From Bugula neritina (lineage: Eukaryota > Animalia > Bryozoa): DNA of 64,000 nucleotides. Within the stretch, counting starts at the first letter, position 1. Each line of letters starts with the position of its first letter. The DNA lies in assembly GCA_964035545.1 (NCBI GenBank), contig OZ037769.1, forward strand, positions 682,001 to 746,000, written 5' to 3'. Position numbers and translations under genes: made by a program. The notes beneath the pieces were generated by a model, which saw nothing but the letters and a program-made list of their open reading frames with translations, did not search any database and was not told where the DNA came from. Below, in pieces: positions 123 to 36,300 of this stretch.

Positions 123-4314
<4,192 letters not shown>

Positions 4315-14754: not shown

Positions 14755-17700
14755 ATGGTAAGTTATAAAGCTCTTGTATATAATAACCAAAATGTTAATT
14801 AAGATTTTGTGCAAAATTAAATTTCAATGCCTTTATTGAGGTAATTGAATTAATACATTTGGCTTATAACTTTATACCGGTCTTTTTTTCAACATTCATT
14901 TTTAATTGACTCATTTTAATATCCTCAACTTTTTAAACAATGCGAGATCATGCTTTGAGGATTACATAAAGTTTATAAAATTTTCGTAAGATATAAAAAC
15001 CAAATATTTTTCTTCAAATATGTAGTGCAGGACAAACAATATGTTTATATAGAAAAACATATGACTATAGCTTTAGATTCCAATACAGTAAGAACTTGTA
15101 AAATTAGTTGAGAGGTACAAATGCATGATTAGGCTATTGTCATCATATAGTTGAGCTAATAAGATTTCATATAACCTGCTATATCATTACAATTAGAATT
15201 TCTGAGTTGTTTATGTGAGTGATTTTGTTTCAGGTAGCGACTCAGCAGCTAATATTACTGACATTAGTCTACGCCCTCAGAGTTGCACATGCACAGGGAG
15301 TAAAGTCTATTAGCATCTGCTCTATTAAGACAGTAACCATCAGCAAAGGCCACCACGGCTACTTGACGTATACCAAGAAGGGAAAACTCCCACTCTGCTA
15401 TTTGGATTTAAGAGCTGATGACACTCGTTATTACATAAGTATCCCCAAAATGTTGTTATACGACCCCAACACGCAGTGTGCAAATGTGTTGAGAGTGGGG
15501 GTTCAGTTATATTGCCTGTCGAGCAGGGGGGCGGGGGCTCTGGAGCGCTTGTCTCCACATGCAAACCTCCGAATCAGTATCTACAGAGCCAGCACCAGTT
15601 TCCAAGTCACATTCTACACTTCAGGTATAAGTTCTGTTCGTAATCACCCTCATAAGTTGTGTTATTGATATTTTTTACATTTGGGAGCAAAATCATAGCA
15701 AATATAATTAAAAAAGATCAAGAGGGGAAATGGATGTGATTTTCTTATTTATAAATTTTAAGAAAGATAAATTTTACCTGTTATCTTGTGTATTTAATCA
15801 ATCCTGATGTGAAATATTTGCTAGAGAGACATCTATACAAACTAGTTTGATAATACTGAATCTATAAATGTGCCAACTAGACAGTTTTTTCTTGTTGTTA
15901 AATTTTAAAATTAGCTATAGTTTTAAACAATGAAATTAAATTCAAAACAACTTTTTTAAGATTTAAATTCAAAATTAAAAAAGCAGCTATTTTTATAATG
16001 TAATGCTGTTTTGGTTTAAAAAAAAGATTCAATGATAAAAGAAGTGTTTTAGAGAACTTTTCTTTAACAGCCTTTTCTATATTTCATGGAATAATGGTTA
16101 CCAGGCTCCTAAGTTTAAGCTCAAAGTTATGAGTTTTTGTGTGTTAACAAAATTCAGTAATCTATGAGAAACCATTGATTGGGACAAAACACTCTTGTTT
16201 CTTTCTTACAGTACCGTCGTGCTTTGATGAGGTAAGAATACCAGACCAGCCTGACCTAGCCCTGCTTTCCGGTGTTTTTGTATCAACTTTCACGCAGCAG
16301 GTATTTACTAACATTCGAACCTGCGAGATGAAAATCACAAACCTTAAATGCAAAGCGACACACGTGAGGTTTGACATTCAACAGCTTCAAATTATAGCAA
16401 AAAATTACGAACTACAAATTGCGGATAAGAATTTTTATTATACAAAAGAAGAAGGCAAGAGTCTACCCAGCAGAATTATCTTAGACTACCCTACGGATGA
16501 ACTCCTTGTACGAGTCAAAGCCGGGCAGAATAGCTATTCAGATGGACCTGCTACTGGATCATTTCGTATAGCCTATACAAGTATGTGTACAGTAAAGTAC
16601 TAAATATTTATTAGACTGAGATCTTATTCTTCACTTGTATAGTAAATCAACACAATTACACATTCATTGCTTTCTATCAGAATATTGTAATAAAATTATC
16701 CTTATATTAACTGACACAGTTTTTGTAAGCGGTTATAGCTGTCAATTTGATAGCGAAGCTACTCACGTAAAAGTTTCCATGCACAGCTAACTATATACAA
16801 ACTTTATTTGTTTCTATCTGTTCAAAAAGGCATATTTTTTATGTTTTTCTTACAAAATATTGATGAAATAGCGTACATTTCTAAGTAAAGCACGTGTTGC
16901 CAAAAGCAGATATAATTTTACAGTCCTTTGCTTAATTTGTGGGCAAGAAAACTAGGAGTGCATAAACAGTGTAATTGTTATTTGTAAAACTAGCTATAGA
17001 GTCTACGCTAACTTTCTTCACTATATAGTTTTAGCTTGTGGAGAGCTGCCTGTAATAGAGAATGTCACTAACATACCCTCAACCCCAGCACCATGGTATC
17101 CTGGTACAACAGTACGCTACACTTGTACTAATGGAAAGTTTAGGTTACTTCGAAATTCTTCATCTCGTTGCGAAGTTCATAGAGGTAAAGCACGTTGGAG
17201 TCACCAAGCACCGGCTATTTGTGGCCCTAGTAAGTACATTTAGATCTGTAAAAACCTGTTAATTTTTTTGCCTTAAGGTGAGTACATGGCACTGCAAGCA
17301 CCTGCCATTTGTCATTTACAAACACCTGCTATACCTGTCATAGCACATTTCCGAGTATCATATTATTGTCATTTCAACAACAACTATAACTTGTAGTTAT
17401 TTGCGATCTCAAAAAGCTGAGTGTCAAAAATGGAGTTATAGAAGCAAAGGAACACAAATGGGGAGAATTTCTTTCCTTCCGATGCAAAGAAGGTTACATT
17501 AAGAGAAGTGAAGTCTACTGCTCTGAATTCGGGCTCTGGGTGGGAAAGCCGAGTTGCTATAGAAACAACTACGCAGGAGAAAGAGGTTTAACTTAGTCTA
17601 GTATTATAATATAGATATATATATATGCATGTCTCTGTTAAAGTGACAAAGGAAAATTTACTTGACTGTGTTTGTGATAAGATACAAAAGAAAATTTGCC

Positions 17701-20069: not shown

Positions 20070-22835
20070 ATGGTAAGTACACAGTGTATGTACATATTAT
20101 TAATATATGTTAGCAGAATCAGCAGTGCAAAAGGGTTAACTAGGCATATTATTTGGTTGAGCTTTACTGTACAAAATGTAGGAGTATTTATACTAATATT
20201 AGCTGTTTTTGTTTCAGTCAGTCAGAAGACAACTCCTGCTGCTACTGAGTGGTTACATCATCATATTGATAAAAGGACAAGATATTAAACCAGTGAATAT
20301 ATGTGATAATAATACAGTGACAGTTGATAGAGGATATGCAGGGATAATAGAACATAGAGAGATAGAGGGAGCATCTGTTAAATGTAGTCTAACTCTGAGA
20401 GCACCTGCTGGTAGTTATATCAGTATACAAGGAGTTAAGGCAGCTGAAGATGGTGCTATCTGTCCAGAGATACAGATAGATGATACAACATACTGTGTTG
20501 ACTCTACAGAACCTGGTATAATACAGAAGTTCACTCAAGAGCAGTCTGTATTATCAGTTTCTACTCTCAGCAACATGACAGGATTTAACCTGGAGCTCTT
20601 CTCAACAGGTATGTATACATAATATGATATTCAATACACAACACGCAAAACTGAAGATAACCTATATATCTATTAACTGTATTTTGTTGGAAAAATTTCA
20701 AATGCTTAGAAGTACAGGAGTAATTTATAGTTTGTAAGAAATATGTCCAATATACCATTTCTGTTACAGTGGCATCCTGTGGTGAAGATATTCAGATACC
20801 AGACAGACCTCAAGCTGAACAGTTGACTGGAATATTCACCAGCTCTTATACAACTAATAAACAGTCATTATCATCCTGTGAGTTTACAATATCAAACCTA
20901 CCAAGTGAAGCTCACTATGTTAGGTTTGATATTACTGAGCTTACAGAATCATCCAGAACTTCCTGGTTTATTGATAATCAGGAGTTTGCTAACTTCCCTG
21001 GTGGATATCTACATGACATAACCTCTACAAACAACCAACTCTCTGTGAGATATAAAAATGAGGGAGATCCTGTATCTGGAGATGTAGAGGGAGTATTCTT
21101 TATGGTTCAGTTTACAGGTGAGTGAAAAACGCACATAAATGAGTTTATAAGCATCAAAACATTATAATGCATTCGCAGCCAAAATTAGATTCTGAAAATT
21201 ACAACTGAAACTTTTTTCAGAAATATCTTGGACTTTCTCCCTGTGTCTGCCATATGCGAGCCAACTTTCTCTTTACTTTTACACAGTGTTAACATGCGGA
21301 GATAAACCTGAAATAGATCATGTGACAAGTACTCCATCTACTAAATCTCCCTGGTTCCCTGGTACAATAATAAACTATTCTTGTGAAGATACTGACCATC
21401 AGTTGAAGTATAACTCTACTTCTGAATGTAAAGTAGATGGTACAGAGGCTAAGTGGGTCAACCAATCAGAGATCAGATGTATTCCAGGTATGTATTCATA
21501 ACATTAACCTGTATAATGAGGATTATATATAGGCTTTCTTTAGTAACTGAATATAATACTTTCAAATGTCTTTTCTAGTCCCCTACTGTACAAAGAAGCC
21601 AAGAAATGTTGAGTTTACTAATAAAACTAAGACTGATACTCATACAATAGTATATGAGTGTATAAAAGGATATGAAAGTAGAGATGGAATAGAAGAAGTT
21701 GTGTCTAGATGTAATTCTACTGATACAGATAATATACCATGGATATGGAGTAATATATTCCTAAAATGTAAACCAGGTATATATATGTATATAGTAATTA
21801 TATACCATGGATATAGAGTAATATATCCCTAACATATTTTACACTACTATATATGTTCCTTGGCCTCTGCAAGTTAGTTTGTTAATAATTATTTTAGTTA
21901 AATGCGACATCACTGATCTCTCCATCAATGATTCCACGACTAGCGTCACATCTAAAGTATGGACAGCTCAAACATATGTCTACCAAGAAGTTCTATCATA
22001 TGACTGTTACCATGGTTACAAGAAAACAAACATGGATGTGGTTCAGTGTCAACATGATAAAACTTGGTCCAGTATTCCGGAATGTACAGAAGCAGGTTAT
22101 TTTTAAGTAGTTCACAAATATATTTCTCTATGCTTGCATTAATTATATGTTTTTACATTAGAATGAATACAACTTTACAAAAGTTGGTATACTTACATCA
22201 GTTTAATAAAAGCTGTAACATGTCTTTTTATAATATTTTATGATGTATTTCATCACAGTCGAGTGTGACATAGCAACACTAGCCCTATCTAATGGAGAGA
22301 TAGAAACATATTACAACTACTACGAGGGAAATAGGCTATACTACTCATGTGATAAGGGCTATTCTATGACTACAGGTTCTATCTGTACACAGTCTGGTAA
22401 CTGGTCACATGACCCTAGTTGTTCAAAGAATACATATGGTGAGCATGAGGTCATAAAGTAGAGCTATTTTTGAAAAAGTGACGTTGTTACTTTTAAAACC
22501 CCGATATTATTTCTAACAATAATGTTGTTTTTTTCAATAATAATCAATTAAGCCGCATATTTTGAAGTTTTCTATGATTTGAGATTTTCACTTTGGTTAA
22601 CCAGCAAATAATAATAATAACTATTTTCATGTTTCTTATGTTATCTAACACTTCATAAAATTATAAAAATATTTTAGGTGCTTTGATTATATGGGGAATA
22701 ATTCTGGGAGTAATAGTGGTTGTTTGTGGTGGTACTTTAATCTACATAACAACGGAAAAAAAATGTAAAAGCACCCCACCTCTGTTTCCTCGATCTTCTC
22801 GCTCAGCAAACCATCGGACCCGCAGTTGGTGTTAG
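20070..22835 (+). CDS. Receptor gene R5: SP-CUB-like x2-CCP x4-TM-short tail lacking Tyr motifs, ~558 aa
   Basis: Exons 20070-20072, 20218-20608, 20770-21117, 21287-21487, 21579-21776, 21898-22095, 22259-22438, 22678-22835; frame open. TM ALIIWGIILGVIVVVCGGTLIYI; tail TTEKKCKSTPPLFPRSSRSANHRTRSWC. Confidence 0.88.
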
Positions 22836-24266: not shown

Positions 24267-27200
24267 ATGGTAAGTACACAGTGTATGTACATATTATTGA
24301 TATTTATAGTTAGTAGAATCAACAGTGCAAAAGGGGAGTCATGCATATTATTTGGTTCAGTTTTTCTGTACAAAATGTAGAAGTGTATATACACTAATAT
24401 TAAACGTTTTTGTTTCAGTCAGTCGGAAGACAACTCCTGTTGTTACTGAGTGGTTACATCATCATATTGATAAAAGGACAAGATATTAAACCAGTGAATA
24501 TATGTGATAATAATACAGTGACAGTTGATAGAGGATATGCAGGGATAATAGAACATAGAGAGATAGAGGGAGCACCTGTTAGATGTAGTCTAACTCTGAG
24601 AGCACCTGCTGGTAGTTATATCAGTATACCAAGAGTTAAGGCAGCTACTGAAGGTGCTATCTGTCCAGAGATACAGATAGAGATACAGATAGATGGTACA
24701 ACATACTGTATTGACTCTACAAGACCTGGTATAATACAGAAGTTCACTCAAGAACAGTCTGTATTATCAGTTTCTACTCTCAGCAACAGGACAGGATTTA
24801 ACCTGGAGTTCTTTACCACAGGTAAATATTACTCTTGTATACAACAGATAAAACTACCATCTGTAAAAATGTATTATTTTATGCTGATATACATAATAAA
24901 GCCAAGTATAAAACAGATATATTACTTTCACAGTAACATCATGTGGTGAAGATATTCAGATACCAGACGGACCTCAAGTTGAACAGTTGACTGGAATATT
25001 CACCAGCTCTTATACAACTAATAAACAGTCATTATCATCCTGTGAGCTTACAATATCAAACCTACCAAGTGAAGCTCACTATGTTAGGTTTGATATTACT
25101 GTGGCCACTGCATCATCTAGAATCTCCTGGTTTATTGATAATCAGGAGTTTGCTAACTTCCCTGATGGATATCTACATGACATAACCTCTACAAACAACC
25201 AACTCTCTGTGAGATATAAAGATGAGGGAGATCCTGTATCTGGAGATGTAGAGTCTGTATTCTTTATGATTCAGTTTACAGGTGAGTGAGCAGTGCAAAG
25301 TAAATAAGTTTTGCTTGAAGACATAGATTATAATACAATCACTACCAAAATATTATAATAGAAAAAAAATTATATTCCGAAAACTACAGTTCAAGCTAAT
25401 GTAGATTTTGAAGATGCAGATTGTCTGCTGCATATGAGCTTATTATACTTTTGTGTACTTTTACAGTGTTGACATGTGGAGATAAACCTGAAATCGATCA
25501 TGTGACAAGTACTCCATCTACTGAATCTCCCTGGTTTCCTGGTACAATAATAAATTATTCTTGTGAAGATACTGACTATCAGTTGAAGTATAACTCAACT
25601 TCTGAATGTAAAGTAGATGGCACAGCGGCTAAGTGGGTCAACCAAACGGAGATTAGATGTATTCCAGGTATATATTTATAACATAAGGCTGTATAATGAG
25701 GATTATATATAGACTTTCTCTAATAACTGAATATAATATTTTAAATACCTTTTCTAGTCCCCTACTGTACAGAAGAGCCAAGAGATGTTGAGTTTACTGA
25801 TAGAACTAAGACTGATACTCATACAACAGTATATGAGTGTATAAAAGGATATGAGAGTAGAGATGGAATAGAAGAAGTTGTATCTAGATGTAGTTCTACT
25901 GATACAGATAATATACCATGGATATGGAGTAATATATCTCTAACATGTACACCAGGTATATGTAGGATATAGTAATAATATACTGTAAATGCTGTATACT
26001 TATTATATTCAAGCTATCTTTATAGCTGCTAGTCTTATTTTAATAATTATACTAAATTATAATAGTAACAAGATATAACCTCTCTAAATTTAAATAAACT
26101 GCTCATTGACATCTGCTAGTATAATTCTTTAATAATAACTTTAGTTGAGTGTGACATCACTGATCTCTCCATCAATAACTCCACTACTAACATCACATCT
26201 AAAGGAGGGACAACTCACACATATGTCTACCAAGAAGTTCTATCATATGACTGTTACTGTGGTTACAAGAAAACAAACATGGATGTGATACAGTGTCAAC
26301 ATGATAAAACTTGGTCCAGTATTCCAGAATGTACACAAACAGGTGATTATTTAAAGGTTTAAATTACTAGTATAATACAATTGTTCTATTTGCCTAAGTT
26401 TATTACTATTTTTTGTATATAAAAGGAATAACCAAACAAAAGTTTCTTTCTATTATTTTGCAATCAGTTTAATTTGTTTTGTGTCTTATTTCCTATACTT
26501 TGTAATGTCTTTTATAACAGCTGAGTGTGACCCAGCAGCACTAAACCTATGTAACGGAGACATACAGACAGACAAATATTATGGAGGAGATAATCTACTC
26601 TACTCATGTAATGATGGTTTTACTAAGACTACAGATCCTGTCTGTACAGAGTCTGGTAACTGGTCACATGACCCTGGTTGTTTGTTGGTCAGAGATGGTA
26701 AAGTTTCTACTTCTGTTTATAAAACTACTGACAGCACAAGAATGATTAGTTATCTAGCCCTGCAGTCTCAAAGGGGTAAGTGGTGATGTTAAACCAAAAC
26801 ACAGGCAATGTTACATAATTATAATAATAAATGGTGGATAGAATTATTCGAATCACTCCCTGCAGTAATATAATATTTATCATAAGATATTATATTTGTC
26901 AGATAACAAAAAATTAATAAGATAAATATGATTTTATTGATGTAATAGCTTATGACTTCGTCCAGAGCACTACTTGAAAACATAACTTCAAATCATACTC
27001 AGCGATAAATGACTCTGTTTATTCACGTTACTAGGCAACAGTATACTAACTACTAATGTTAAATTTACAATGAGTCTGTCTGTCTGTCCTGCATCACTTT
27101 TGATATTTCATTCTATATATTTTTGATAGTTTAAAATCCCACTGTTGGAGCATACCTTTGCTAATTTTGAACTGCAAAATATTTGTGTATTTAGATGGTT

Positions 27201-30300: not shown

Positions 30301-33300
30301 TTTTTTATAGAATACTTTATGTCTGAGGTTGTCCTAATAAAGGTGTTGCCAGATTTTAGCTAACATTTTGTTAAAGCTATATATTTAGAGTATTTTATTA
30401 AATAAAAGCAGACTTATTGGAAGCAGAATTTTGAATGCACATACAACATTCTGCTTCCAATATGTCTGATTTTATGTTTACTTGTACTTCTTTACAAGAA
30501 TATAAATGTTTACTTATTTTATTACAATGCACTCCAATAAAGTATTGTATTAGAAAATGTTTAAAGAAACTAAAAAAATTTTTAATACAATTTTATTTAT
30601 TTAATATTTTTTTAATATTTTTAAAAAATAGCATCAATTAAATGGCTAATGAAGTTAGCTCAGTACAAGCATCTTGTATCACTAAAACTTGGTGTTTGAA
30701 ATGGGTAAAATATTTATTGCAATCAGCGAGCAAGTTAGATTTGTCTATCCCTATGTGAGTTTTATTGTTTTATGTTGGAAACTGATGGATTATCAAATCT
30801 ATTTTACACTTAGAAATATCTTCAGTATTAGATTATTCTTTTCACTAAGCTGTATAAACCATTGTGTAAGATTCAATGACACAGCTGGGTTGGTGCCTTT
30901 GTTGAAGCCCTCTTGTTTTCTAGTAGAAATGATAAAAATAGTTTGAATCTAAAATTTCCGTTATATAATATGAGGTGATGTATGTTGTTTACTAAATACC
31001 AGGAAAAAACTTTTGTTATTTAAAGACACTGTTATAAAAACTCTGGTAACGCAATAGATCCAGGTGTATTGTTTCTCTCCTTTGCTGTAAAAGCTTTTCT
31101 TGTTGCTATAAAGCATTCCACATGGAATGGATTGCATTATGAGTATGTTTGTATAAGCACAATGAATAAATAGAGTCAACTGGTTCATATTATGTAGTTG
31201 AATAAATTCATTTTGATACCACCATTGTTCTTTTCACAAGGAAGTGTATCTATAATCACAAGTATATATACTGAAGTATTTGACTTGTGATAATAGACTA
31301 TACTTTACCCCCTGCATGACTAGTATTATTGTGAATATATAAATCTATACTGTGCATAAGATACAACACTAGGTGTACACATCACAGCTTGTACATAAAC
31401 TATCTACTTACATGGTACCTTCAATACAATGGTAAGTACACAGTGTATGTACATATTATTAATATATGTTAGCAGAATCAGCAGTGCAAAAGGGTTAACT
31501 AGGCATATTATTTGGTTGAGCTTTACTGTACAAAATGTAGGAGTATTTATACTAATATTAGCTGTTTTTGTTTCAGTCAGTCAGAAGACAACTCCTGCTG
31601 CTACTGAGTGGTTACATCATCATATTGATAAAAGGACAAGATATTAAACCAGTGAATATTTGTGATAATAATACAGTGACAGTTGATAGAGGATATGCAG
31701 GGATAATAGAACATAGAGAGATAGAGGGATCACCTGTTAGATGTAGTCTAACTCTGAGAGCACCTGCTGGTAGTTATATCAGTATACCAGGAGTTGCTGT
31801 AGCTGAAGAAGGGGAAACCTGTCCAGAGATACAGATAGATGGTACAACATACTGTATTGACTCTATAGAACCTGGTATAATACAGAAGTTCACTCCAGAA
31901 CAGTCTGTATTATCAGTTTCTACTCTCAGCAACATGGCAGGATTTAACCTGGAGCTCTTCTCAACAGGTATGTATACATAATATGATATTCAATACACAA
32001 CAGTAAAACTAAAGATGACCTATATATCTATTAACTGTATTTTGTTGGAAAAATTTCAAATGCTTAGAAGTACAGGAGTAATTTATAGTTTGTAAGAAAT
32101 ATGTCCAATATACCATTTCTGTTACAGTGGCATCCTGTGGTGAAGATATTCAGATACCAGACAGACCTCAAGCTGAACAGTTGACTGGAATATTCACCAG
32201 CTCTTATACAACTGATAAACACGCATTATCATCCTGTGAGTTTACAATATCAAACCTACCAAGTGAAGCTCACTATGTTAGGTTTGATATTACTGAGCTT
32301 ACAGAATCATCCAGAACCTCCTGGTTTATTGATAATCAGGAGTTTGCTAACTTCCCTGGTGGATATCTACATAACATAACCTCTACAAACAACCAACTCT
32401 CTGTGAGATATGAAAATGAGGGAGATCCTACTACTGGAGATGTAGAGTCTGCATTCTTTATGGTTCAGTTTACAGGTGAGTGAAAAACGCACATAAATGA
32501 GTTTATAAGCATCAAAATATTATAATGCATTCACAGCCAAAATTAGATTCTGAAAATTACAGCTGAAACTTTTTTCAGAAATATCTTGGACTTTCTCCCT
32601 GTGTCTGCCATATGCGAGCCAACTTTCTCTTTACTTTTACAGTGTTGACATGTGGAGATAAACCTGAAATCGATCATGTGACAAGTACTCCATCTACTGA
32701 ATCTCCCTGGTTTCCTGGTACAATAATAAACTATTCTTGTGAAAATACTGACTATCAGTTGAAGTATAACTCAACTTCTGAATGTAAAGTAGATGGCACA
32801 GAGGCTAAGTGGGTCAACCAATCAGAGATCAGATGTATTCCAGGTATGTATTCATATAACATAAGGCTGTATAATGAGGATTATATATAGACTTTCTCTA
32901 ATAACTGAATATAATATTTTAAATACCTTTTCTAGTCCCCTACTGTACAGAAGAGCCAAGAGATGTTGAGTTTACTGCTAAAACTAAGACTGATACTCAT
33001 TCAACAGTATATGAGTGTATAAAAGAATATGAGAGTAGAGATGGAATAGAAGAAGTTGTATCTAGATGTAGTTCTACTGATACAGATAATATACCATGGC
33101 TATGGAGTAATATATCTCTAACATGTACACCAGGTATATGTAGGACATAGTAATAATATACTGTAAATGCTGTATACTTATTATATTCAAGCTATCTTTA
33201 TAGCTGCTAGTCTTATTTTAATAATTATACTAAATTATAATAGTAACAAGATATAACCTCTCTAAATTTAAATAAACTGCTCATTGACACCTGCTAGTAT

Positions 33301-36300
33301 AATTCTTTAATAATAACTTTAGTTGAGTGTGACATCACTGATCTCTCCATCAATAACTCCACTACTAACATCACATCTAAAGGAGGGACAACTCACACAT
33401 ATGTCTACCAAGAAGTTCTATCATATGACTGTTACTATGGTTACAAGAAAACAAACATGGATGTGATACAGTGTCAACATGATAAAACTTGGTCCAGTAT
33501 TCCAGAATGTACAGAAGCAGGTGATTATTTAGAGGTTTAAATTACTAGTATAATACAATTGTTCTATTTGCCTAAGTTTATTACTATTTCTTGTATATAA
33601 AAGAATAAACCAAACAAAAATTTCCTTTTTATTATTTTGCAATTAGTTTAATTTGTTTTGTGTCATATTTCCTATACTTTGTAATGTCTTTTACAACAGC
33701 TAAGTGTGACCCAGCAGCACTAAACCTATGTAACGGAGACATACAGACAGACATATATTACGGAGGAGATAATCTACTCTACTCATGTAATGATGGTTTT
33801 ACTAAGACTACAGATCCTGTCTGTACAGAGTCTGGTAACTGGTCACATGACCCTGGTTGTTTGTTGGTCAGAGATGGTAAAGTTTCTGCTTCTGGTTCTG
33901 GAACTACTGAAAGCACAAGAATGATTAGTTATCTAGCCCTGCAGTCTCAAAGGGGTAAGTGATGATGTTAAACCATAACACAGGCAATGTTACATAATTA
34001 TAATAATAAATGGTGGATAGAATTATTCGATCACTCCCTGCAGTAATATAATATTTATCATAAGATATTTTATTTGTCAGATAACAAAAAATTAATAAGA
34101 TAAATATGATTTTATTGATGTAATAGCTTATGACTTCGTCCAGAGCACTACTTGAAAACATAACTTCAAATCATACTCAGCGATAAATGACTTTGTTTAT
34201 TCACGTTACTAGGCAACAGTATACTAACTACTAATGTTAAATTTACAATGAGTCTGTCTGTCTGTCCTGCATCACTTTTGATATTTCATTCTATATATTT
34301 TTGATAGTTTAAAATCCCACTGTTGGAGCATACCTTTGCTAATTTTGAACTGCATTCTCTCAACTGTGAAATATTTGTGTATTCAGATAGTTTGATTGGA
34401 GTGGTGGTAGTTCTGGTACTAGCAGTGGTTACACTGAGTAGTATTATTCTCTACTTGAAAAGAAGTAGTCTGCCCTGTAGAGACACCCCATCTGATAAAC
34501 ATGAAGTATATGAAGAACCTATGTCTACTCGACCCTCAAACTCAGCAAATCCTCCCACCAACACTTACGAGCAGCTCACCACCTCTCCATCATCAGCATA
34601 TGAACAACTTCAACTGAACACAACAGTTCCTCTTTATGAGAACAGACAGGATATGACATCACCAGCCATTGAGATTTAGAACAGATGTTATATATTATAC
34701 CAGTAACTGCTTGCTCATGATGATTTGACATTTATTTTTACGGCTTAATCTTACAACTGAGCAACTTTACGTGCTTTTATTCAGTGTCTATTAAGTAATT
34801 TTCCAAGACGATATGAGGTTGTGTTCTCAAGTCAACCTTGCAAATTTATACATGTAGTTTAGAATGAAATATTTATTTTTTATTGCTAAAATGACATAAC
34901 CATTTGATTATACATAAGCATTACATTATTAATATATTGCTAAGAATGTGTGCACTGCATGCCACACCAATGATCATTTGTTATACATTTCTTTCATTTG
35001 ATTTATATTTTTTACAAATTGATCAACTAAAATGTTTGCGTAATATTTAGTTTACAGAGCAGAAGGTTTTTGTTTCATTTTAGAAATAGAGAGCTAGTAC
35101 AGAATTGGTGATATTTTGCTAGCAGCAACTTTGCAAATCAGCAACATGAATTTTTTAATAGAACACTCGTAACATATTTCTAAATAGAAATATGATAGGG
35201 AATATATTTTACAAAATAGCAAACATTTTAAATTGTAGTGCAACAAATTTTCATTATTTATTAAAACCAATAAATACACACTATATAATATTGCTTTGAG
35301 AATTGTATTGTAACTATAAGTGCCTTGTATTAATAACTATGTGCATGGGCTGGAATAAAGGTGTTCTTTGAAGTCCATATAACTGTGGGTTATCAGCCCA
35401 TTTTTCTACTAGCAATACTGATACATACTAAATGGCAACATTATAGTCTCAGCTCCACACCTCACAATAGCATGCTTAGGGGTCCTCATAACTACACAAC
35501 AACTAGTTATATTTCGCTAAACCTGTGAATAGCGCGAGTGCATAGTTACAAGCTGTTTGGGGAGCGGCTGAGTACCCACCCAGACTAGCCAAAGTTACAA
35601 CTCTTTGCTATATTATCATCTCAATTCATATACAGTTTCTACTTAACACATAAATAAGAATAAGAATTGGACTCTGCATGTTATATTATATAGTTTAGAC
35701 ATACAGTAGCTTTGCTCGATGGAGTTGTCTTCCTATAAGAGCTGTCAGTCTACAAGAGAGGATAATTCTCTTTACCCATTAATTAGGTTAGTGAGATATA
35801 ATATGTTATTATATAATAATAGTATATATAACATTACATATAATATATTATTATATATAATATTATATACAATAATATATATAATACTATATATATAATA
35901 CATTATATATAATTTTATACATAATATTATTATATATTACTATATATATAGTGTTATATATAATATTATTATATAATATTACATAATAATATTATATATA
36001 TTATTGTATAATGGTTTGTTTCATTTAGGTTTTCAGTATCAACGATTTCATCGAATACCTGTTTTCAGATATTGCATCTGTGAGTTATTAACTAAATTTG
36101 ACAGCATGAGATAGCTATAATATTGCAATGGCTATCTTTTAATTGTCAAAACTCAACACAGCATATCATGAAGTTGCTGAATCCCAAGGGAGAAAGCTGC
36201 ATTTACTCCTGCCAGCTGATTAAAGTTATTTTACAGAAGTGAACTTGCTGCCAAATGACAGTGATGCTATTTGTTGCGGATATGCAACTGCAAATGTTTG

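Follow-up and report, generated by a model that had tools for sequence, protein, structure and literature searches.

Exon-concentrated differences beside an identical intron in a clustered CUB-like receptor family of the bryozoan Bugula neritina, with gene conversion as a candidate explanation

Introduction

In the major histocompatibility complex (MHC) class I/II and KIR/LILR gene clusters, exon patches differ while introns are homogenized, motifs are shuffled by gene conversion, and the arrays carry different signaling tails. A similar patchwork with varied tails, on unrelated folds, is described here for the R family of the bryozoan Bugula neritina. Seven paralogs of this family (R1 to R7, all on the same strand) lie in a 64,000-nt stretch of AT-rich eukaryotic DNA with short introns (GenBank assembly GCA_964035545.1, contig OZ037769.1, positions 682,001 to 746,000 of the forward strand; hereafter the window, with positions counted from its first letter). 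The encoded protein is predicted to be a type I membrane receptor in which a signal peptide is followed by two CUB-like domains, about four sushi repeats, a membrane anchor, and a tail with tyrosine motifs, and the analysis centers on exon 2 of R7 as compared with that of R5. In the MHC binding groove, nonsynonymous change (dN) clearly exceeds synonymous change (dS), whereas the excess in the R family was not significant. The combination of a CUB fold with complement control protein (CCP)/sushi modules is shared with the CUB-plus-sushi group (C1r/C1s/MASP, CSMD, SEZ6, and cubilin). The R family differs from that group in having no Pfam CUB match, Y-D motif, protease, or EGF module, and in being a hypervariable multigene array, which the families of the group are not. 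To our knowledge, no recognition genes are known for bryozoans.

A bryozoan genome paper reports weak similarities to Alr1 (PMC7576161). The Hydractinia Alr family resembles the R family in forming a large cluster of genes for type I membrane receptors in a marine invertebrate that lives in colonies, in having an N-terminal domain that is mostly missed by Pfam and whose fold was recognized from predicted structure, in the immunoreceptor tyrosine-based activation or inhibition motifs (ITAM or ITIM) of some tails (ITAM-like in some R-family members), and in its fast evolution (PMC9546547). The Alr domains, however, have immunoglobulin folds of the V-set and I-set types, in contrast to the CUB-like fold of the outer R-family domains, after which come sushi repeats, and a role in fusion/rejection has been proven genetically for Alr1 and Alr2 (PMC9546547). 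The fester gene of Botryllus schlosseri likewise encodes a membrane receptor with a sushi (short consensus repeat [SCR]) domain in a colonial animal, and most of its codons are under purifying selection with a minority having a dN/dS ratio (omega) above 1 (PMC3549757). It is, however, a single polymorphic locus whose transcripts are heavily alternatively spliced and whose product is predicted to span the membrane three times, whereas the R family consists of clustered paralogs; fester variation was measured among population alleles, with no CUB domain reported, whereas the R-family comparison is among paralogs (PMC3549757). No description of an R-type receptor family was found in a full-text literature search.

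Results

The major data for the R5/R7 pair were direct counts of base differences. The first-pass annotation of the window had reported an intron 1 identical between the two genes next to an exon 2 with 14 replacements and about 3 synonymous changes, and both counts were reproduced. Intron 1 (31432 to 31576 in R7 and 20073 to 20217 in R5) matched letter for letter, with 0 differences in 145 nt, while exon 2 (31577 to 31967, plus strand, in R7 and 20218 to 20608, plus strand, in R5) contained 20 base differences, of which 17 were in 14 codons with a changed amino acid and 3 were in synonymous codons. All but 1 of the 20 lay within 31730 to 31967, in keeping with the location of 31725 to 31945 given earlier, and 11 fell in the hypervariable loop ahead of the third cysteine (31787 to 31825, plus strand), which reads PGVAVAEEGETCP in R7 and QGVKAAEDGAIC in R5. 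The loop strings previously listed for R5, R6, R7, and R1 were all correct. The 12-bp duplication reported for R6 exon 2 (24419 to 24821, plus strand; duplication at about 24667 to 24678) is real but is not private to R6, being present in L012 and, in mutated form, in L007, both paralogs of another cluster. The claim that divergence is concentrated in the membrane-distal domain was borne out only in part: the differences are clustered in exon 2, but exon 3 (32128 to 32475, plus strand), encoding the second CUB-like domain, also contained 14 differences with 9 replacements and 1 synonymous change. The divergence is therefore not restricted to the outermost domain.

Taken over exons 2 and 3, R5 and R7 differed at 34 of 739 nt, compared to 6 of 653 nt in the noncoding DNA of the same block (Fisher P = 3e-5). 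The exon differences comprised 30 amino-acid-changing differences at 568 nonsynonymous sites (5.3%) and 4 synonymous differences at 167 sites (2.4%), and introns 1 to 3 contained 6 differences in 472 nt (1.3%), intron 2 (31968 to 32127, plus strand) differing at 3 of 160 bases. The nonsynonymous rate was about fourfold that of the introns (P = 4.7e-4), and synonymous sites were statistically indistinguishable from the introns within the block. The R6/R7 block, which is just as young, served as the control, and its sushi exons showed no excess (12/466 versus 15/457 in introns). The 181 nt upstream showed 0 differences between R5 and R7, and the upstream 574 nt differed by 8.5% versus about 1% inside the block. 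With noncoding DNA only ~1% different, the 5' parts of R5 and R7 were deduced to be a very young duplicated or converted block. The differences within it were tightly clustered, and three codons were changed at all three bases. Exons 2 and 3 together had 23 replaced codons, and 22 of these were at columns also variable in the rest of the family (P = 1e-5). Synonymous changes made up 4 of the 34 differences, in agreement with the family-wide share of 19% (P = 0.20), as expected of imported differences.

Micro-conversion, one of two explanations offered in the first-pass annotation, was supported by donor-identical patches, discordant introns, and a recombination test on exon 2. The donor patches were assessed by a sister/donor triplet run test in place of a GENECONV-like pairwise run test, which had low power here. 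The 3' patch of R5 exon 3 (GDVEGVFFM; exon at 20770 to 21117, plus strand) showed 0 differences from paralog L008 over 10 codons and 8 from R7, and eight consecutive informative sites were of the donor type (P = 5e-5; corrected P of about 1.5e-3). In R7 exon 3, the ACT-ACT patch (DPTTGDVE; 32424 to 32453, plus strand) was identical to that of paralog L003, which lies about 190 kb off on the opposite strand. Over 10-codon windows, R7 showed 0 differences from L003 versus 4 to 5 from its sister R5, with a run of 7 sites (P = 0.011 before correction), and the 30-nt pattern of the patch was found again with 2 mismatches at C5:903943-903972. The exon 2 loop of R5 is L004-like, differing once from L004 and eight times from R7 (P = 0.005 before correction). 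Recombination was further indicated by a permutation test similar to the pairwise homoplasy index (PHI) test (exon 2, P = 5e-4; exon 3, P = 0.066) and by the 51% of site pairs that failed the four-gamete test. The flanking introns point to discordant relationships: between paralogs L009 and L014, intron 1 differed by 0.7% and intron 2 by 31%. Different subgroups had loop cassettes and the 12-bp duplication in common. Since the exons are alignable among all copies and most introns are unalignable between paralogs, conversion tracts would be confined to exons, and introns would stay identical.

Exactly 22 copies of exon 2 were detectable in the genome, all of them open and all on contig C5, in three clusters at 589 to 616 kb, 675 to 714 kb, and 898 to 951 kb. 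Cysteines C8 and C35 were invariant across the 22 copies, and C61 and C72 were nearly so. The exons were 85 to 95% identical among about 19 copies, and the rate comparisons along exon 2 cover 17 closely related paralogs. Codons 1 to 50 of the mature domain, termed the constant half (QDIKP...SYISI; 31637 to 31786, plus strand, in R7), were almost letter-identical in 19 paralogs, synonymous sites included, with proportions of synonymous (pS) and nonsynonymous (pN) differences of 0.03 to 0.05 and 0.03, respectively. Beside this near-identical segment, intron 1 showed a mean difference of 13.8% among the nine paralogs carrying it. The near-identity of the half-exon looks like either homogenizing conversion or nucleotide-level constraint, and homogenizing conversion is the most likely means by which the copies would be kept alike. 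The loop, on the other hand, contained indels and up to 11 residue types per column, and its tree length was 7.8 substitutions per codon versus 0.87 in the constant half, nine times faster, with synonymous and replacement changes both elevated. The signal-peptide part of the exon (31577 to 31636, plus strand, in R7; hydrophobic SVRRQLLLLLSGYIIILIKG) was found in three types in the family, with a pS of 0.42. The remainder of CUB-like domain 1 in R7 (31826 to 31967, plus strand) is variable at scattered positions and constrained in the region of its C-terminal strands.

The constant-half segment is about 150 nt long (31637 to 31786 in R7 and about 614 to 765 in R1), and its boundaries are abrupt in R1 and L018. 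In these two copies the constant half was 97% and 89% identical, respectively, with 26 to 57% identity beyond it, and R1 exon 2 (551 to 941, plus strand) accordingly resembles the core family in the constant half only. L008 (C5:899720-900116) and L017 (C5:950992-951373) have a common loop cassette (G/HYKYFEGYFC) and a 3-nt insertion (RPEG). As they differ in signal-peptide and first-intron type, the cassette appears to have been exchanged between subgroups.

A profile search with the 22 copies retrieved the B. neritina protein KAF6039009.1, proteins of Watersipora subatra in which the R-family domain is accompanied by a sushi repeat, and a tunicate (Clavelina) cubilin. KAF6039009.1 was only 84 to 89% identical to R4 (15237 to 17590) when compared exon by exon, from which it follows that either the B. 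neritina assemblies are deeply diverged (cryptic species) or family turnover is very fast. Contigs of other samples carry further loop variants, yet they differ by about 15% in introns. Two of these external contigs, L044 and L045, were considered as alleles and rejected, as their introns differ by 13 to 17%; they therefore represent a diverged lineage or other paralogs. L045 (a contig of JGI metagenome 3300003318) lacks ~67 nt of the constant half and has no third cysteine at its loop, and it is probably a broken family copy.

Diversifying selection, the other explanation in the first-pass annotation, was not established. At the level of the region, dN/dS was not significantly above 1, the outcome that had been named in advance as speaking against it. 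For the R5/R7 pair, pN/pS was 1.19 (Nei-Gojobori), and the 5.3% replacement versus 2.4% synonymous difference obtained by direct codon count gave P = 0.14. In the loop, pN/pS was 1.0 family-wide and omega was 0.87 on the loop's own tree; a tighter loop window (columns 73 to 85) gave an omega of 1.7 to 2.0 (P = 0.07 to 0.10). The rest of the domain had an omega of 0.52, and alignment columns 115 to 140 had an omega of 0.35, significantly below 1. Site models were run with our own code, unbenchmarked against PAML/HyPhy, in which branch lengths could change only through a common scale factor. For exon 2 on a single tree, twice the log-likelihood difference (2dlnL) was 40.7 for M1a/M2a and 43.8 for M7/M8, and the M1a/M2a value dropped to 19.1 when the partitions were given separate rates and to 7.9 (P = 0.019) when they were given separate trees as well. 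For exon 3 the M1a/M2a value was 38.1 on a single tree, and several of the flagged sites had two residue types only, which is typical of conversion artifacts. As recombination was significant, single-tree site models were not trusted as evidence of selection. A likelihood-ratio value of 83.8 (loop columns 73 to 85 on the domain tree) was disregarded as a failure of the null-model optimizer. A single codon (31796 to 31798, plus strand; GCT, Ala in R7, and AAG, Lys in R5) was left after rate differences and mosaicism were allowed for. It has 11 amino acids among the 17 paralogs, a posterior of 1.0 for omega above 1 in all three site-model setups, and an omega of about 5 to 7.

The variable sites were placed by the strand order of the predicted model rather than in three dimensions, with the short strands 46 to 49 and 52 to 54 taken as one bent strand; by this order, 12 of the 14 R5/R7 replacements in exon 2 were in or beside loops at one end of the sandwich. 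The scatter of variable sites that would have spoken against a specificity-determining surface, as proposed in the annotation, was not seen, since by topology the sites were mostly in loops at one end of the fold. In a weak profile alignment to a cubilin CUB domain, the hypervariable loop falls on the segment of the calcium-binding glutamate. That glutamate-bearing CUB loop contacts ligands in C1s, MASP, and cubilin. A specificity-determining surface is plausible on this analysis, and the loops may bind ligand, serving to diversify recognition specificity.

The assignment of the exon 2 domain to a CUB-like fold is of moderate strength and was made from a predicted structure. The "CUB" label used in the first-pass annotation finds backing in the predicted fold and in weak profile evidence, but a Pfam match is absent. 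All domain and homology searches were run exon by exon, the spliced protein not being used as a query. Exons 2 and 3 gave no Pfam hit at E values up to 10, CUB (PF00431) included, and a PDB sequence search with the family profile gave no match; judged by sequence, the domain would not be placed in the Pfam CUB family. The AlphaFold model of the exon 2 domain had a predicted local distance difference test score (pLDDT) of 73, and its top Foldseek hits were nearly all CUB domains (best E value, 1.3e-3; template modeling [TM] scores of 0.5 to 0.58). Alignment of the model to solved CUB domains with VIA-align gave Z scores of 6 to 8.6, where values under 8 can reflect merely a common arrangement, and root mean square deviations of 2.6 to 3.5 over residues 8 to 109. 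The language-model look-alikes of the domain were CUB families, and the four cysteines match the C1-C2 and C3-C4 spacing of CUB domains. The family profile reached the Clavelina cubilin, which contains true CUB domains, with an E value of 2.7e-5, but the hhalign probability was just 12%. The acidic triad of calcium-binding CUB domains was not found, the aligned Glu being present in 7 of 17 copies in a weak alignment, and the Tyr-Asp expected after the third cysteine was absent, with P-E-I-Q standing in its place. For exon 3, the language-model look-alikes were again CUB families (0.91), which is a lead only; the structure model of this exon was set aside as too poor for a fold search (pLDDT 55). 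Exon 6 (33325 to 33519) matched Pfam Sushi (PF00084) with an E value of 7.7e-9 and 36.3 bits (cutoff, 20.7), while exons 4 and 5 show the sushi cysteine pattern alone.

The second exons of R1 to R7 start near 551, 6148, 10302, 15234, 20218, 24419, and 31577, respectively. The first coding exon of R7 is predicted to end at the ATG (31429 to 31431, plus strand), with intron 1 beginning directly after the start codon. This ATG/GT junction is kept in the nine paralogs with this intron 1 type, and the GenBank model KAF6039009.1 likewise begins with M followed by exon 2. Exon 2 of R7 encodes the signal peptide and the four-cysteine domain of about 110 residues, and the domain encoded by exon 3 is of comparable length. 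A membrane span and tyrosine-motif tail follow downstream of the sushi-type exons in R7. The resemblance of R7 to R5 ends at about exon 4; 3' of this point (32643 to 33700), R7 matches R6 at 97 to 99% identity, in introns as well as exons. The coding sequence of R7 exon 3 contains a perfect inverted repeat (32247 to 32290) whose 12-nt arms (ATATCAAACCTA/TAGGTTTGATAT) are separated by 20 nt, and R5, R6, and several other paralogs show the same reverse self-match.

Discussion

The explanation that we favor, with a probability of roughly one-half, is that exon patches in the young R5/R7 block were overwritten by gene conversion and then sorted by selection. The flagged stretch would encode the variable loops of the N-terminal CUB-fold domain of R7, and the two CUB-like exons would have been overwritten in patches of 10 to 40 bases from other family members, with a few private point mutations added on top. 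The tracts would land in exons, leaving the introns identical, and the direction of copying would be from the other paralogs into R5 or R7. Selection would then sort the result, in that the loops tolerate or favor change (omega of about 1 to 2, and about 5 to 7 at one codon) while the framework is constrained (omega of 0.35 to 0.5). The first 50 codons of the domain would be held nearly letter-identical in 19 copies, most likely by homogenizing conversion.

Several results weigh against this explanation. The R5-L008 patch was the only one to survive correction for multiple testing, and the pairwise GENECONV-like test was mostly nonsignificant, with only R5-L008 reaching P = 0.017. No copy of the R7 exon 2 loop was found elsewhere in the genome assembly within 3 mismatches, and among the 20 differences in exon 2, 7 are found only in R5 or R7; conversion is therefore not the whole account of the flagged stretch. 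For the remaining differences, either point mutation contributes or the donors are in unassembled haplotypes.

The first alternative is the neutral drift of unconstrained surface loops, accompanied by conversion and having no adaptive value. It would account for the loop omega of 0.87 and the family-wide pN/pS of 1.0, for a loop pN (0.22 to 0.40) that is similar to the intron 2 divergence (0.25 to 0.39) for most pairs, and for the rise of synonymous change in the loop as well. Drift was nevertheless deemed unlikely, as the open frame and the four cysteines are kept in all 22 exon 2 copies, one codon has reached 11 residue types in 17 copies, and replacements recur at the same columns. These columns correspond to the canonical CUB ligand-binding loop, according to the weak alignment and to known CUB structures.

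Point mutation with strong diversifying selection after the R5/R7 duplication, without templated copying, was considered a poor account of the data. Amino-acid-changing differences at four times the intron rate (P = 4.7e-4), the 7 private differences among 20, the R7 loop without a donor in the genome, the loop omega point estimates of 1.7 to 2.0, and the codon at omega of about 5 to 7 in every model are all in its favor. Against it, pN/pS is 1.19 for the pair, the nonsynonymous versus synonymous contrast gives P = 0.14, the loop omega is not significantly above 1, and the likelihood-ratio statistic became fivefold smaller once mosaicism was allowed for. With divergence at 1%, independent hits are an implausible origin for three codons changed at every base, and two exon 3 patches are letter-identical to other paralogs.

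A reversed polarity, in which the R5 and R7 paralogs would be older and recent recombination would have homogenized their introns and 5' region while selection kept the exon patches different, was judged improbable. Such homogenization of introns is known from HLA class I, and it would fit the 8.5% difference in the upstream 574 nt versus about 1% in the block, as well as the constant half and intron 1, which are visibly homogenized family-wide. It demands several separate tracts with ends coinciding with the exon patches, however, and the patches identical to L008 and L003 are explained more simply as imports. An assembly or polishing artifact is barely credible: reads could be misassigned in a tandem array with exons 85 to 95% identical among about 19 copies, but cross-mapping would homogenize the copies rather than make private codons, the frames and cysteines are intact, the differences are at family-variable columns, and further loop variants occur in independent samples.

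For multigene families, the R5/R7 comparison suggests that exon-limited gene conversion is the first reading to consider where identical introns are found beside diverged exons; the dN/dS of this pair is below the level needed for a claim of positive selection. The R family, in which a constant scaffold is combined with a hypervariable loop on the probable interaction face of the CUB fold and with ITAM-like tails in some members, would extend patchwork loop diversification to this fold. More speculatively, and with little confidence, the three clusters were hypothesized to be a bryozoan recognition complex (histocompatibility or immunity) of ~20 CUB-fold receptors that draw on a shared pool of loop cassettes, with the constant half-exon as the homology anchor at which loop-swapping tracts start. 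If the same copying also ran in somatic cells, this would be a templated diversification system on a nonimmunoglobulin scaffold. The R family provides specific candidates for the recognition of self/non-self or of microbes in a colonial phylum that would be the third of its kind.

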